Sequence record: OZ195934.1
Direction: 5' to 3' (one strand)
Length of the DNA: 64,000 nt
How positions within the stretch are numbered: the stretch's first letter is position 1; every line of letters starts with the position of its first letter. The notes under the pieces were generated by a model. It was not told the origin of the DNA. It searched no databases and saw nothing but the letters and a program-made list of their open reading frames with translations. The position numbers and the translations under genes are program-made. Below, one piece after another: positions 35,051-40,156 of this stretch.

Positions 35051-35740
35051 ATGAATCGTAAACTTGCACTTGTAGCTGCATTTGCAGCATTTGCAATGAC
35101 TGGCTGTAATGATGTTACACTCGCAACAACAACAAACGATAAAATTGTTGCAGTGCGTGATGTTTTAAATCACGAAGAATCTGTTATGATTAATCGCTGG
35201 CTTCAATTAGCAAGTGGCGATTCGTACTTGTACGATGATATGTGGGCTGCGCTTGCAACTCGTAACAAGTATGGCGGTACGTCAAATAAACGCGCAGACT
35301 CAGAACTACCATTCTGTGATGTGATCGAGGGTGTCGTAAAGAGTGAAAAACGTATACGTGATTCATTCAAAGGCACGTTGTCTAATCAGTGGAAGACGAA
35401 ATACGGTTTGACTCTTGCTCAACAGTGTGATTACACGCCACCACTGACGAAGAAAGAAAAAATGGCGTTGCTTGAAGAGCGAGAAATCGATCTTAAACTT
35501 GAAGACGCATCACCGAAGCCAACAACGATGAACGAAGTCGTTGATTCGGTTAACACGTTGCTTGACCCGCATGAGTATGACTATCTGATTGAGTCTGCGC
35601 GTGAGTGTAAACGTGCTAAGGTGAAGTTGTTGAGTCTGACTAACGTAGGTCAACCATTGACGATACAAGACGGTGACGACGCTCGTAAGCTAATCATCGA
35701 ATGTAAAATGCACAAACTAGAAGTGGAATTGAACAAATGA
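35051..35740 (+). CDS. Predicted lipoprotein, paralog of 51674-52393
   Basis: Signal peptide with lipobox MTGC; PFCDVI, QW..KYG.TL..QC, C.RAK.KL, C.MH.LEVELNK. Confidence 0.8.
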   Translation: MNRKLALVAAFAAFAMTGCNDVTLATTTNDKIVAVRDVLNHEESVMINRWLQLASGDSYLYDDMWAALATRNKYGGTSNKRADSELPFCDVIEGVVKSEKRIRDSFKGTLSNQWKTKYGLTLAQQCDYTPPLTKKEKMALLEEREIDLKLEDASPKPTTMNEVVDSVNTLLDPHEYDYLIESARECKRAKVKLLSLTNVGQPLTIQDGDDARKLIIECKMHKLEVELNK

Positions 35741-36519: not shown

Positions 36520-36525
36520 TGTTTA

Positions 36526-36566
36526 AGCCCTCCTAAATATGTCATATAATCATATGCAGGAGGGCT
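36526..36566 (+). promoter_or_regulatory. Late-promoter candidate inside an SD-sequestering hairpin
   Basis: AGCCCTCCT (36526-36534) / AGGAGGGCT (36558-36566) perfect inverted repeat covering the SD; CTAAATA at 36533-36539. Confidence 0.75.
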
Positions 36567-36570
36567 ACGC

Positions 36571-37104
36571 ATGCCAATGCAAACATCGGGAGCTATTTCC
36601 CTTAACGATATCAAAACATACTTTGGCGGTGATACGTCTGTCCCGATGAACTCATATTATCGAGGTGGCGCGTACATCCCCGACATTACAGAAAATGCAG
36701 CAATACCTACGTCTGGACAAATCAGTATAAACAACTTCTACGGCGCTATGCGTCTAACTGCGGTTGATACTACTCGCAACACGAGTCGAAGCACTGATAG
36801 CACACGAACAACGTCGTATACGACTAGCTGGACTAGTTCATGGACGACTACATGGCAAACGAAGCGCGGTTCGTCGAGATCTACAGGTTATACAACTACA
36901 TGGTCAACAAGTACAGGCTGTGGTAAGGGTGTATGTGGATCTCAGAACACGAGTCGAAGCACATCAAGATCGACCGGTTACACAACATATTGGTACACGA
37001 GTCGAACTACAAGTCGAGGGACGAATCGCGGTACCGCTCGAAGCACAGCATATTCGTATACTACTACATGGTCGACAACATTCTCGACTCAAACACCGGA
37101 ATAA
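36571..37104 (+). CDS. Thr/Ser/Arg/Trp-rich period-4 repeat protein; predicted long beta-hairpin fibre/adhesin with an N-terminal attachment domain
   Basis: N-terminal domain with duplicated TSG.IS..(D/N) motifs, then TSRS/TSWT period-4 repeats mirrored around GCGKGVCG. Confidence 0.8.
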   Translation: MPMQTSGAISLNDIKTYFGGDTSVPMNSYYRGGAYIPDITENAAIPTSGQISINNFYGAMRLTAVDTTRNTSRSTDSTRTTSYTTSWTSSWTTTWQTKRGSSRSTGYTTTWSTSTGCGKGVCGSQNTSRSTSRSTGYTTYWYTSRTTSRGTNRGTARSTAYSYTTTWSTTFSTQTPE

Positions 37105-37106
37105 TC

Positions 37107-37316
37107 ATGACAGAAAGTGAGAAAAACGAGCTACAACGGCTCAATAATGAGGTGAATCGTTTGAATGAAGTTTGTGCTAACTTACAAGAAAGTCAAACGA
37201 TCATCCTTGAAACTATAATTGACCACATCGCGTCGCTAGATGCAGACCGCGATACATTATTGCGTAGTTACGACGATGCGATTCAACGTATCATCGATAA
37301 GCACAGTGGTGAATAA
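37107..37316 (+). CDS. Small coiled-coil protein (possible assembly partner)
   Basis: ELQRLNNEVNRLNEVCANLQE heptad pattern; 2 nt after the fibre gene stop codon. Confidence 0.7.
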   Translation: MTESEKNELQRLNNEVNRLNEVCANLQESQTIILETIIDHIASLDADRDTLLRSYDDAIQRIIDKHSGE

Positions 37317-38165
37317 ATGTTACATGAAATTCGTGAAGAGACTCAGGGGTTTAATAATGCGTGTCGTATAGGCACGCTTGTTCTCAGTGATCATAAGCCG
37401 TACGATTCGTGCTTCGAAGCACTTGAAATATTACGCTCAAATGGATATCCGTGTAACTTCGATATCAATCATGACAATGGCGGCGGGTTTAGTACGAATG
37501 AATGGGTGTCTCAGTTAAGAGCATTTTCCGTTCGCTATATGAAATCCTCTGTTCATACAAAAGCACTTGTTCAGTCATTCTATGACAATGAGCATGATCA
37601 TGTAATCGAGCTGCCGAAACGCGGGGACAAATACAAGCTAAAATCACTTGCTCCTTGTTTCAAGCAATACAATCGAATCGTGTTCATTGGTGGTACTAAT
37701 CTGATTCATTCACATATGGATTTAGACAAGATTGATGTCATTCTTGACATGGATTCTAGTGTCGTGATAAAGCCACACCCACTTACAAATGTACAAGACA
37801 TGAAAATGTTGACCGAGCGTTATGGTAAAGGTCGCGTTCTGTACAACAAATTGAATGGGATCGAATTGCTGCAACAGTGTGAGCGTGCATGGATCCCCGT
37901 CTCGTCTGAAATGTGGTTCACTTGTGCCTTTTTAGGTATCCCGTACGACACGATCACGAAGTCTGACTACGAGATTGGTGGCACGTACTACGCGATGTTA
38001 GAAGCAATGAAGATCATTCAACGTGACACTAAGTTGCCGATGAACGTCATCGCGTCGCGAATCATCACATCACCAACGTCTGGTATATACACGTCGATGT
38101 ATGCATTCAAACAAAACTATCCCAACTTCATTGCGAATGTTCAATCACATGGTGGGCGCGTATGA
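37317..38165 (+). CDS. GT-B glycosyltransferase-like protein (capsule biosynthesis KpsC/KpsS-like)
   Basis: VVIKPHP motif followed by LLQQCE...SS...FLGIP, typical of the C-terminal Rossmann domain. Confidence 0.55.
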   Translation: MLHEIREETQGFNNACRIGTLVLSDHKPYDSCFEALEILRSNGYPCNFDINHDNGGGFSTNEWVSQLRAFSVRYMKSSVHTKALVQSFYDNEHDHVIELPKRGDKYKLKSLAPCFKQYNRIVFIGGTNLIHSHMDLDKIDVILDMDSSVVIKPHPLTNVQDMKMLTERYGKGRVLYNKLNGIELLQQCERAWIPVSSEMWFTCAFLGIPYDTITKSDYEIGGTYYAMLEAMKIIQRDTKLPMNVIASRIITSPTSGIYTSMYAFKQNYPNFIANVQSHGGRV

Positions 38166-38808: not shown

Positions 38809-39495
38809 ATGAAAGAAGTTATATTGATATCAGGTCTAGACAGCATCGTTTTGTATGAAATGCTAAAGTCGGCTAGTCCGAATCTCATTCCAGTTTATTT
38901 CAAATGGGGATTTGACATTGATGACGCGGAAATCAAGATGCTGCCGTCCGGTACTAAAATTCACGAAGTCCCTGAATGGATGCAATTTGACACCGATGGC
39001 AAGCTTGGTGGGGATGAGTGTATCAACTTAGATGGGCGTGATACGATCATGATGAACTTGGTTATGCACATCTACAAGCCGTATGTTATCTACAAAGGCA
39101 CGATTGCAAACGACACGTCATATGTGGAATCTCATGTTGAATTTACTGAGAAAATAAGTAGAACGTGGCGTCTTATCAACAGACACGAGTGTGACATTAA
39201 ACATCCGTTTATAAAGAAGACTAAGCGTGATATTATCGCGTATGCTAACAAGCTCGGAATTGACGCACGTGATTATCAATATTGCTACAATGCTGTGGGT
39301 AATTGTGGCGTATGTAATAAGTGTCGAATGACTCGATTATTGAGTATGTATTCCGACAATCCTGACGTTGAATTTTTACGCAGTTATCTTGGTGAGTGTC
39401 AAAAATCAGCGACGAAGAAAATCGGCGACTACTTGGTGTCGGGTGATGTCGTCGAAGAACTAACAACTTTTTTAAGGAAGTATAATGAAAATTGA
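38809..39495 (+). CDS. QueC-like PP-loop ATP pyrophosphatase
   Basis: N-terminal ILISGLDS (degenerate SGGxDS), PF...TK..I, and C-terminal Zn site YC......CGVCNKC. Confidence 0.75.
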   Translation: MKEVILISGLDSIVLYEMLKSASPNLIPVYFKWGFDIDDAEIKMLPSGTKIHEVPEWMQFDTDGKLGGDECINLDGRDTIMMNLVMHIYKPYVIYKGTIANDTSYVESHVEFTEKISRTWRLINRHECDIKHPFIKKTKRDIIAYANKLGIDARDYQYCYNAVGNCGVCNKCRMTRLLSMYSDNPDVEFLRSYLGECQKSATKKIGDYLVSGDVVEELTTFLRKYNEN

Positions 39496-40156
39496 ACATC
39501 ATTTGATTGATGGACGTGATTTGATTGTTATTGATGATGCGTTCTCAAGCGCAGATCTTAGCACAATATCACACGTCATTCATGGGATCACTGACGCTCA
39601 TTGGGCTGAGGGGCACGACGAAAACTTGCTTCGATATTCAGGCATTCATGCCATGAACGTAGATGCAGGAACGGACAGTGCAGATAGCGTAATTCGCGGT
39701 GACTGTGTGTTTTTAGAAAACTTACCAGAACACGAATTTATATGTGGGTTGGTTGACAGTGCGATCATCAATGCGTTCTCTACTGTGTCTATCGTAAGTG
39801 ACGATGACAAGGCGAAGATACTAGAAGACAAGAACGAGTTTTTCTGCCGCGTGTTGCGATACATGCCTGGGTATTACGATGACTGTGCAGATGGCGACAA
39901 CTTCTTGCACACGGACATTCGACTTGGGGTGATGTTCACTCCCGTTATCAATCCAGAAGAGCCGCAAAGCACTCTTTATTACGAAGATGATAAATTCGAA
40001 ACGCCTGTCCTGACACTCGATCACAAGCCCGGTCGTTTAGTTGTGTTTGACGGTCGAATTGTTCATGCTCCTAGTAAGTGTTTTAAAGTACCGCGCTATG
40101 CGATGTCGCTACACAACGACAATGATATGCGCCATTATTTGTCGAAGTTTAGATAG
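39485..40156 (+). CDS. 2OG-Fe(II) oxygenase (prolyl-hydroxylase-like)
   Basis: LIVIDDAF start, HTD...KPGRLVVFDGRIVH...R facial triad and 2OG-binding Arg. Confidence 0.85.
   Translation: MKIEHHLIDGRDLIVIDDAFSSADLSTISHVIHGITDAHWAEGHDENLLRYSGIHAMNVDAGTDSADSVIRGDCVFLENLPEHEFICGLVDSAIINAFSTVSIVSDDDKAKILEDKNEFFCRVLRYMPGYYDDCADGDNFLHTDIRLGVMFTPVINPEEPQSTLYYEDDKFETPVLTLDHKPGRLVVFDGRIVHAPSKCFKVPRYAMSLHNDNDMRHYLSKFR

Follow-up and report, generated by a model that had tools for sequence, protein, structure and literature searches.

We analyzed a 64,000-nucleotide stretch of sequence record OZ195934.1 (hereafter, the window) and focused on one gene, which encodes a protein of 177 amino acids (aa). The protein consists of a short N-terminal domain, referred to here as the anchor, and a long C-terminal region in which arginine (Arg) and aromatic residues are placed as mirror images about a central loop. 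Over the 6 kb compared, the phage represented by the window showed 100% identity to the Vibrio phages D483, D525, K575, 6E35-1b, and 6E35.1a, which are 253-kb KVP40-like Straboviridae isolated on Vibrio crassostreae. An earlier note on this DNA had proposed that the C-terminal region is a single long β-hairpin and that the N-terminal domain attaches it, perhaps to a tail fiber. As described below, a comparison of related proteins makes the fold-back of the C-terminal region likely, and the genes that surround members of the anchor family point to the tail.

The gene and the mirror pattern of its product

The gene and the features around it are listed in Table 1. A strong Shine-Dalgarno (SD) sequence ends 7 nucleotides (nt) 5' of its ATG, and its product corresponds to QZI87587.1 of phage 6E35.1a, which is labeled "putative cell wall mannoprotein" (GenBank MW824377). 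Membership of a cell wall mannoprotein or serine (Ser)-rich surface family was considered and rejected, as the sole NCBIfam match scored 13.9 bits against a cut-off of 650; this label reflects amino-acid composition only. No match to the protein was found in PADLOC, or in NCBIfam above the cut-off. The open reading frame (ORF) is not called in the OZ records of D486, D490, D491s, and D525, nor in the re-annotation of 6E35.1a (PMC12028318). Three short ORFs (36 aa, 29/32 aa, and 127 aa) are annotated in its place at positions 36541–37316 of the window, in OZ195931, OZ195933, OZ195947, OZ196389, and the re-annotated 6E35.1a, and the 127-aa ORF extends the real downstream 69-aa gene N-terminally, out of frame. 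The records of phages F86 and D479 likewise miss their orthologues of the gene.

The C-terminal region comprises two arms of repeated four-residue units (tetrads) joined by a tip loop. As the earlier note had described, residues whose positions sum to 240 are matched across the two arms, i.e., R69–F171, R73–W167, R79–Y161, Y83–R157, W87–R153, W91–R149, W95–R145, R99–W141, R103–Y137, Y107–R133, and W111–R129, with K98 opposite Y142. Thus, every Arg of residues 67–173 (11 in total) lies opposite an aromatic residue. The six threonine (Thr) pairs that had been listed (T85–T155, T93–T147, T97–T143, T105–T135, T109–T131, and T113–T127) are also present, as is the loop G116-C117-G-K-G-V-C122-G123 at the symmetry center. 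At this register there are 12 basic–aromatic pairs and no like–like clashes; the other registers scanned (i + j = 220–261) gave at most seven pairs each, with a period-4 echo at ± 4.

We evaluated this pattern against several null models. When residues 61–177 were fully shuffled, none of 5000 sequences reached 12 pairs at its best register (maximum, 8), and when only the identities at the 28 fixed R/K/F/W/Y positions were permuted, 12 pairs were obtained in 4 of 5000 and 2 of 2000 trials. Two further controls were less favorable to a hairpin in this protein alone. A run-preserving null, in which the Arg and aromatic runs of arm 2 were kept and their order was shuffled, gave 110/1500 (∼0.07), and 1 of 27 circular shifts also scored 12. 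In the window protein alone, the mirror pattern is therefore real, but only suggestive once the block structure is granted.

Two sources of the mirror at the DNA level were tried and rejected. A DNA palindrome was rejected because the reverse complements of Arg codons do not encode aromatic residues, and only one 14-nt imperfect inverted repeat was found. Simple tandem duplication does not provide a full explanation, as direct DNA repeats 168 nt apart relate the arm ends only, and the block order (3-4-2-2 in arm 1 and 2-2-4-3 in arm 2) is a mirror complement, not a direct repeat. Apart from the relation between the two arms, no longer-period repeat was found in them. Based on the mirrored block order and on this property of the Arg codons, the pattern is evidently selected at the protein level and is not an artefact of the DNA. 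The suggestion that the arms might present an ice-binding Thr array was not borne out: position 0 of the tetrad is R/Y/W/F and position 2 is T, so Thr alternates with Arg or aromatic residues on the same face and a TxT array is absent.

Table 1. Features at the locus (positions in the window)
Feature	Position	Strand	Description
Gene for the 177-aa protein (anchor plus predicted hairpin)	36571..37104	+	ATG start, intact ORF
N-terminal anchor domain, residues 1–62	36571..36756	+	Two related motifs (residues 4–19 and 46–59)
Arm 1, residues 63–116	36757..36918	+	Tetrad T-x-[Arg or aromatic]-x; blocks Arg3-aromatic4-Arg2-aromatic2
Tip loop, residues 117–123 (C117-G-K-G-V-C122-G)	36919..36939	+	Symmetry center; possible disulfide
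Arm 2, residues 124–177	36940..37101	+	Same tetrad; blocks Arg2-aromatic2-Arg4-aromatic3, mirror complement of arm 1
RNA stem-loop	36526..36566	+	9-nt 5' arm (36526–36534) pairs with 3' arm (36558–36566), which holds the SD AGGAGG (36558–36563)
Late-promoter-like box CCTAAATA	36532..36539	+	31 nt before the ATG, at the junction of the 5' arm and loop of the stem-loop
Downstream 69-aa gene	37107..37316	+	Starts 2 nt past the stop of the 177-aa gene
282-aa gene	37317..38165	+	Invariant K-P-H-P; function not assigned

Orthologues, an exchanged allele, and the predicted fold

Syntenic orthologous ORFs of 168–185 aa were found in phages F86 (185 aa), KVP40 (KVP40.0254, 176 aa counted from an internal Met), D479 (170 aa), VS2 and QD01 (168 aa each), and V07 (176 aa). 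The register in each orthologue was chosen from the Arg–aromatic pairing alone. F86, KVP40, D479, and VS2 had 11, 9, 13, and 9 mirror pairs, respectively, with no clashes and with different orders of the Arg and aromatic blocks; in D479, the pattern of the arms is irregular and includes a single long run of Arg. The run-preserving null gave 62/1500 for F86, 7/1500 for KVP40, 0/1500 for D479, and 69/1500 for VS2, and, for the metagenomic relatives P0001, P0008, and P0041, 19/1500, 0/1500, and 4/1500, respectively. Mirror complementarity thus survives this null in most of the divergent syntenic orthologues.

The other elements of the pattern are also maintained. Across the orthologues, the ladder position (tetrad position 2) is Thr in 115 of 130 cases (88%), tetrad positions 1 and 3 are Ser/Thr/Gly/Asn/Ala, and 18 ladder Thr are invariant in a five-way alignment. 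The symmetry center is a Gly/Lys-rich loop in every orthologue; this loop contains a Cys pair in F86, D479, and the window phage, whereas KVP40 and VS2 have none. In all eight Vibrio-phage orthologues, the best register pairs the C-terminal residue with the fourth residue past the anchor motif, and because this pairing is constant across lengths of 168–185 aa, length changes are split equally between the two arms. The covariation of Arg and aromatic positions about the loop, which the earlier note had proposed to look for as the length varies, was therefore observed: the orthologues are mirror-complementary, and their arm lengths change symmetrically.

A second allele of the gene was found in D486 and D490, which are otherwise ∼99% identical to the window phage. 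It differs from the window sequence at 57 nt, all within codons 67–177 (17%), with no difference in codons 1–66, three in the 600 nt upstream, and three in the 260 nt downstream. The edges of this ∼330-bp recombination cassette (window 36769–37101) are sharp at the anchor/arm junction and at the stop codon. Because the differences are confined to codons 67–177, the arm cassette has evidently been exchanged by recombination. In this allele, 30 codons are changed synonymously and 12 non-synonymously, and these codon counts indicate purifying selection on the predicted hairpin frame. All 11 Arg–aromatic pairs are kept. The sole altered pair is K98–Y142, which lies on the opposite face and is changed on both sides, with K98S occurring together with Y142N.

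More distant relatives were examined among metagenomic proteins. P0001 and P0008 have like arms, with 10 pairs each, and carry a globular insert of ∼50–80 residues at the center; a domain exactly at the symmetry center is what an antiparallel stalk predicts. By eye, this insert resembles, in shared motifs, the domain between the anchor motifs of the short relatives P0016 and P0022–P0033. P0041 has arms of different spacing and a discoidin-like domain ahead of the anchor. A word-indexed search with the arms alone gave no match at E ≤ 0.001. Judged from these sequences, the family-level evidence makes the mirror pattern convincing.

The proposal of a single hairpin was upheld in one part: the fold-back about the loop is supported by the covariation, the symmetric lengths, the two-sided change, and the central insert, whereas AlphaFold2 did not support the hairpin beyond the turn. 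The following results weigh against it. The full-length AlphaFold2 model (24 homologues) had a pLDDT of 45 and was unusable, with the N-terminal domain also poorly modeled; the model of the arms alone (single sequence) had a pLDDT of 58 and was a meander outside the tip; when this arm model was compared with the PDB by Foldseek, no match at E ≤ 0.001 was obtained; and we know of no experimental precedent for a coreless two-stranded ribbon of such length. The strands of the arm-only model span residues 84–99, 103–118, 121–137, and 162–174, and its turn, at K119–G120, coincides with the predicted center, with a pLDDT of 73–75 around the turn. The β-meander was rejected as an alternative fold. 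A register near i + j = 202, read from the sequence by eye, would set W91–W111, W95–Y107, and R99–R103, and because like residues would face each other, the meander is unsupported by the sequence pattern.

Based on these results, we infer the fold from covariation and not from a model, and we consider it likely that residues 63–177 form a fold-back hairpin. More tentative, and in our judgment somewhat short of an even chance, is the proposal that the arms are a free-standing, coreless, two-stranded β-ribbon rod of ∼18 nm, with its register set by a two-letter code, which would constitute a new class of natural protein rod. With the same reserve, such a rod might evolve by two-sided flips and symmetric insertions, and might serve as a stalk or contact surface for a large family of phage tail proteins.

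The anchor family, genomic setting, and neighboring genes

The protein matched the uncharacterised family phrog_30374, with an E-value of 4.5e-20 for the whole protein and 4.4e-17 for residues 1–64. It has the features of the anchor family, i.e., an N-terminal domain of ∼60 aa with two Ser-Gly-x-Ile-Ser...Phe/Tyr-Gly motifs, and the N-terminal duplication that had been noticed in the sequence (residues 4–14 and 46–56) is real and conserved. A HMMER search of 1.84 billion representatives returned 1977 clusters (50% identity) at E ≤ 1e-3 and 122 at E ≤ 1e-10, and there were 34 word-indexed matches. Among the matches listed, most were confined to the anchor domain or reached partly into the arms. 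Residues S6, G7, F18, G19, Y29, Y30, G33, P46, G49, I51, F56, and G58 are invariant or near-invariant. PDB sequence and profile searches with the 177-aa protein, the relative P0017, and the family alignment found no related solved structure, S16 gp38 included.

The C-terminal partners of the anchor are diverse, and include GP38-type Gly-rich (PF05268), Gly_rich_2, PKD-like, and uncharacterised globular domains. PF05268 is carried by the relatives P0004, P0011, P0014, and P0017, the last of which also matches phrog_2056. In the short sub-family formed by P0016 and P0022–P0033, the two anchor motifs stand apart, one at the N-terminus and the other at the C-terminus, and enclose a globular domain. 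The anchor may thus be a clasp made of two pieces, with two different sites at which an insertion is tolerated. Paired paralogues of the family were found in phage RTH11 (L007, 6001–6471 and 7020–7502) and in a T4-like metagenome contig (L014, 997–1398 and 1402–1773), and their side-by-side arrangement suggests that a single docking site is served by alternative heads.

In eight of nine contexts outside the KVP40 group, the stop codon of a tail-fiber or tail-tip gene is overlapped by the anchor-family gene or marks its start. These are Xanthomonas phage RTH11 (with the second anchor paralogue nearby), Burkholderia phage JC1, Rhizobium phage IG49, Ralstonia phage YL1, Pseudomonas phages Itty13 and Dolphis, Stenotrophomonas phage BUCTxx99, and the siphophage metagenome contig L024, in which the gene follows those for a GpJ-like protein and a 281-aa protein. 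In the ninth context, Xanthomonas phage Rb1, one gene lies between the tail gene and the anchor-family gene. In JC1, Dolphis, Itty13, and YL1, the C-terminal 100 residues of the upstream fiber are shared with both distal long-tail-fiber subunits of the window phage, and the module of the JC1 fiber also matches T2 gp37, the fiber bearing the gp38 adhesin in phages of the T2 type (PMC3157838). In K575 (L026, 5110–9539), two adjacent genes for a "distal long tail fibre subunit" (526 and 925 aa) have the same C-terminal module, which is that of T2 gp37 and of the fibers preceding anchor-family genes elsewhere; no small adhesin gene was found after either of them in K575.

The earlier idea of an N-terminal anchor attached to a tail fiber is thus supported by the genomic context of the relatives, but not by that of the gene itself in the KVP40-like phages, where it lies away from the fiber genes. 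Several observations on these phages argue against a function at the tail. In the window phage group, ∼34 kb separate the gene (∼160.5 kb) from the fiber cluster (195–204 kb); the two distal-subunit genes are followed by another fiber gene and by a 187-aa phrog_15749 protein, not by the gene for the 177-aa protein. The block from the 282-aa gene onward has been described as an ancestral anti-defence island (PMC12028318), and the gene lies at its left edge. Phages K566 and K567 do not have the gene, yet they are viable and fast-adsorbing, which means that it is dispensable. Finally, the protein has never been seen in virions; the virion proteomics of PMC12028318 could not score the ORF, as it was missing from the annotation.

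In K566 and K567, the gene is the first of a block that is wholly replaced, with the breakpoint at window position 36521. The homology ends one base past the stop codon of a 260-aa gene. The replacement removes the gene for the 177-aa protein, the 69-, 282-, and 214-aa genes, queC, and more, and in their place (L002, 8524–14525) there are several radical-SAM genes and a gene for a predicted lipoprotein of 475 aa. Because the gene was unannotated, the island boundary set in PMC12028318 (VP6E351A_0314) is ∼800 bp too far right. On the other side of the breakpoint, among genes without an assigned function, window 35051–35740 encodes a 229-aa protein (phrog_8733) whose N-terminus is lipoprotein-like, and a proteomic abundance of 3 in viral particles was reported for it (PMC12028318, Table S8).

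The region just upstream of the gene contains an RNA stem-loop and a late-promoter-like box (Table 1). The stem-loop has a predicted energy of −25.6 kcal/mol (z = −5.2), and none of 200 shuffled sequences folded as well. F86 has a weaker hairpin of another sequence that also covers the SD (z = −2.4), and no significant hairpin over the SD was detected in KVP40, D479, or VS2. TAAATA occurs at this place in four of the five orthologues, D479 having TAAGTA, and the box reads TCTAAATA in F86 and CATAAATA in KVP40 and VS2. Among the late genes of the window phage, TATAAATA precedes those for the sheath, scaffold, and major head protein, and TCTAAATA precedes those for the tail tube and the proximal long tail fiber, all at similar distances; TAAATA is present just 13 times on the + strand of the 64-kb window. 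The exact 8-base T4-type late-promoter consensus has one occurrence in the window, which is not at this gene. The variant box was accepted after the same variant had been found upstream of the tail tube and proximal fiber genes. In T4 soc and e, a late promoter lies inside a hairpin that masks the SD, and translation is thereby limited to late transcripts. By analogy, the stem-loop and box in the window appear to resemble this late-gene arrangement and offer a lead, and we infer that the gene is expressed late.

The same setting raises the possibility that the protein belongs to the island that follows it (QueC, NAD-salvage, and radical-SAM genes), as an intracellular counter-defence or host-takeover protein whose ribbon would bind nucleic acid, a nucleotide signal, or a defence protein. 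The gene is the first of the block swapped in K566 and K567, with the breakpoint just upstream, and the published island begins just downstream, at the 282-aa gene; no structural genes are nearby, and the net charge is ∼+11. We nevertheless regard this explanation as unlikely. PADLOC gave no match; in eight of the nine contexts the anchor-family gene directly follows a tail gene and in the ninth it is one gene away; modules typical of surface proteins (GP38 Gly-rich, PKD-like, and discoidin-like) occur in the relatives; the gene is preceded by a late-promoter-like box; and a Cys pair closing a loop of 4–8 residues suits an oxidizing, extracellular setting.

We also analyzed the genes that follow. 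The 69-aa gene adjoins the gene for the 177-aa protein in all of the Vibrio-phage orthologues, and its product is a possible candidate partner. For this product, no informative family match was found except one weak PADLOC match (PDC-S06, E = 0.018), and it showed no similarity to the product of the 62-aa gene that occupies the corresponding position in the distant contig L014. A homologue of the 282-aa protein is also encoded after an anchor-family gene in L014 (E = 7e-6), a contig in which two anchor-family genes stand in tandem and genes for glycosyltransferase family 8 and radical-SAM proteins are nearby. The 282-aa gene may be functionally linked to the anchor-family gene. Besides the invariant K-P-H-P motif, the 282-aa protein has an invariant S-E motif, and its family profile gave a sub-threshold match to the glycosyltransferase/Kdo-transferase KpsC (6mgb, E = 0.65); the protein may be a glycosyltransferase. 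For the 282-aa and 214-aa proteins, two homologue clusters only were found, with no Pfam, NCBIfam, or PHROG function. A 223-aa protein encoded after queC (window 39485–40156) has a weak FlmC-type 2OG-Fe(II) oxygenase match (E = 8.6e-5), far below the cut-off.

These neighbors bear on a second alternative, which is compatible with a hairpin, namely that the arms are mainly a substrate, the Thr/Ser ladder of which is O-glycosylated or otherwise modified by neighboring gene products such as the 282-aa protein. The arrangement in L014, with its glycosyltransferase family 8 and radical-SAM genes, would fit this idea, as would the profile match to KpsC and the near-invariant Thr at the ladder positions. 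However, the KpsC match is not significant, neither the 282-aa nor the 214-aa protein has an assigned family function, synteny in T4-like phages is conserved in general, and the anchor-family genes of other phages are without such neighbors. This role therefore seems rather improbable.

Alternative explanations of the arms, proposed role, and comparison with known systems

A further alternative concerns the arms themselves. The C-terminal 115 residues could be a disordered sticker-and-spacer region, the mirror being a by-product of tandem duplication of block units. The composition of the region is extreme: of residues 61–176, 62 of 116 are Ser or Thr. Low AlphaFold2 confidence, the direct DNA repeats linking the arm ends, the value of ∼0.07 under the run-preserving null, and the circular shift that also scores 12 would all be accounted for in the same way. 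Disorder does not readily explain the strict period of 4, the occupation of 88% of the orthologues' ladder positions by Thr, or the five orthologues that are clash-free with different block orders, including the irregular D479, for which the strict null gave 0/1500. The exactly symmetric changes in arm length, the pair changed on both sides, the purifying selection on the arms, and the domain insertions exactly at the center also count against it, and we judge it quite improbable. Lastly, that the gene is not real but a chance ORF across a repeat-rich spacer, as its omission from the inspected OZ records and from the re-annotation of 6E35.1a might suggest, is already contradicted by the homology of the N-domain to ∼2000 protein clusters, the intact orthologous ORFs at 45–64% identity, the 30 synonymous vs. 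12 non-synonymous codon changes in the swapped cassette, and the strong SD 7 nt before the ATG, and on this sequence evidence we give it a negligible probability.

The explanation that we favor, with moderate confidence, is that the gene encodes a small late protein of two modules, a tail-docking anchor and a fold-back cation–π β-ribbon. Residues 1–62 would dock the protein on a fiber or another part of the tail, because the anchor family is typically encoded directly after tail-fiber genes. Residues 63–177 would fold back at C117-GKGV-C122 into a two-stranded antiparallel β-ribbon of ∼54 residue pairs, roughly 18 nm in length. One face of the ribbon would carry cross-strand Arg–aromatic (cation–π) pairs alternating with Thr–Thr pairs, and the other face small polar residues. 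The Arg–aromatic pairs differ in orientation from one to the next, and this variation would serve as a two-letter code to fix the register. In some relatives, the ribbon would be a stalk with a globular domain at its tip. In the KVP40-like phages, the tip is a bare loop, and the ribbon itself, with its charge of about +11 and its richness in Trp, Tyr, and Thr, would then be the working surface. The most plausible role would be that of an accessory adhesin or a spacer touching the cell envelope.

Our confidence differs among the parts of this explanation. Association of the protein with the virion or tail is slightly favored, whereas an adhesin-type role is possible but the less probable case. 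K566 and K567 use LamB as the receptor and the other phages use OmpK, and no OmpK-binding candidate has been found among the annotated fibers (PMC12028318). Because K566 and K567 are without the gene and there is no such candidate, the protein might be the missing OmpK-side adhesin in the KVP40-like phages, but we consider this improbable. Proteomics and receptor-binding-protein screens based on these annotations are blind to the protein. The anchor family, with ∼2000 clusters and interchangeable C-terminal modules, is likely to represent an under-recognized layer of host recognition. If the fold is true, the protein would be a natural, very long β-hairpin whose register is held by a readable Arg/aromatic code, which would give insight into the stabilization of coreless β-structure and provide a template for rigid protein rods.

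Among known systems, the gp38 adhesins of the T2/S16 type (PF05268; PMC3157838) are similar in several respects. They are also small modular proteins with N-terminal attachment and an exchangeable C-terminal specificity module. Relatives of the anchor are encoded right after fiber genes sharing the T2 gp37 C-terminal module, some of them have a GP38-type Gly-rich C-terminus, and the C-terminal module of the 177-aa protein has been swapped by recombination between near-identical phages. In contrast to gp38, the 177-aa protein has no Gly-rich motifs, with nine Gly and no Gly runs in residues 61–176, and its gene is not directly 3' of the distal long-tail-fiber gene.

Elongated β-structures without a conventional hydrophobic core include the central sheet of Borrelia OspA and the repeats of staphylococcal SasG and Aap, which are rigid surface spacers. 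Unlike the hairpin predicted here, these are three-stranded or repeated domains and have no Arg/aromatic mirror code, and no sequence similarity to them was detected in PDB sequence, profile, and Foldseek searches.

Our literature search for Arg–aromatic ladders or zippers returned eukaryotic cases only. In the Trp–Arg ladder of thrombospondin type 1 repeats and WSXWS motifs (PMC6954052), Arg–Trp cation–π stacking stabilizes elongated, core-poor β-structure, as is predicted here. These are three-stranded, disulfide-rich eukaryotic domains of ∼60 residues, in which one strand bears WxxW and a different strand the Arg residues. The 177-aa protein differs in having two arms, a period of 4 instead of 3, both residue types on both arms, Thr–Thr rungs in between, at most one Cys pair, and a predicted structure about ten times longer.

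Designed β-hairpins, such as the tryptophan zippers, are synthetic peptides of 12–20 residues with cross-strand aromatic or cation–π pairs. The likeness lies in the cross-strand pairs on one face that set the stability and register, whereas the predicted hairpin of the 177-aa protein is natural, 115 residues long, and under selection.

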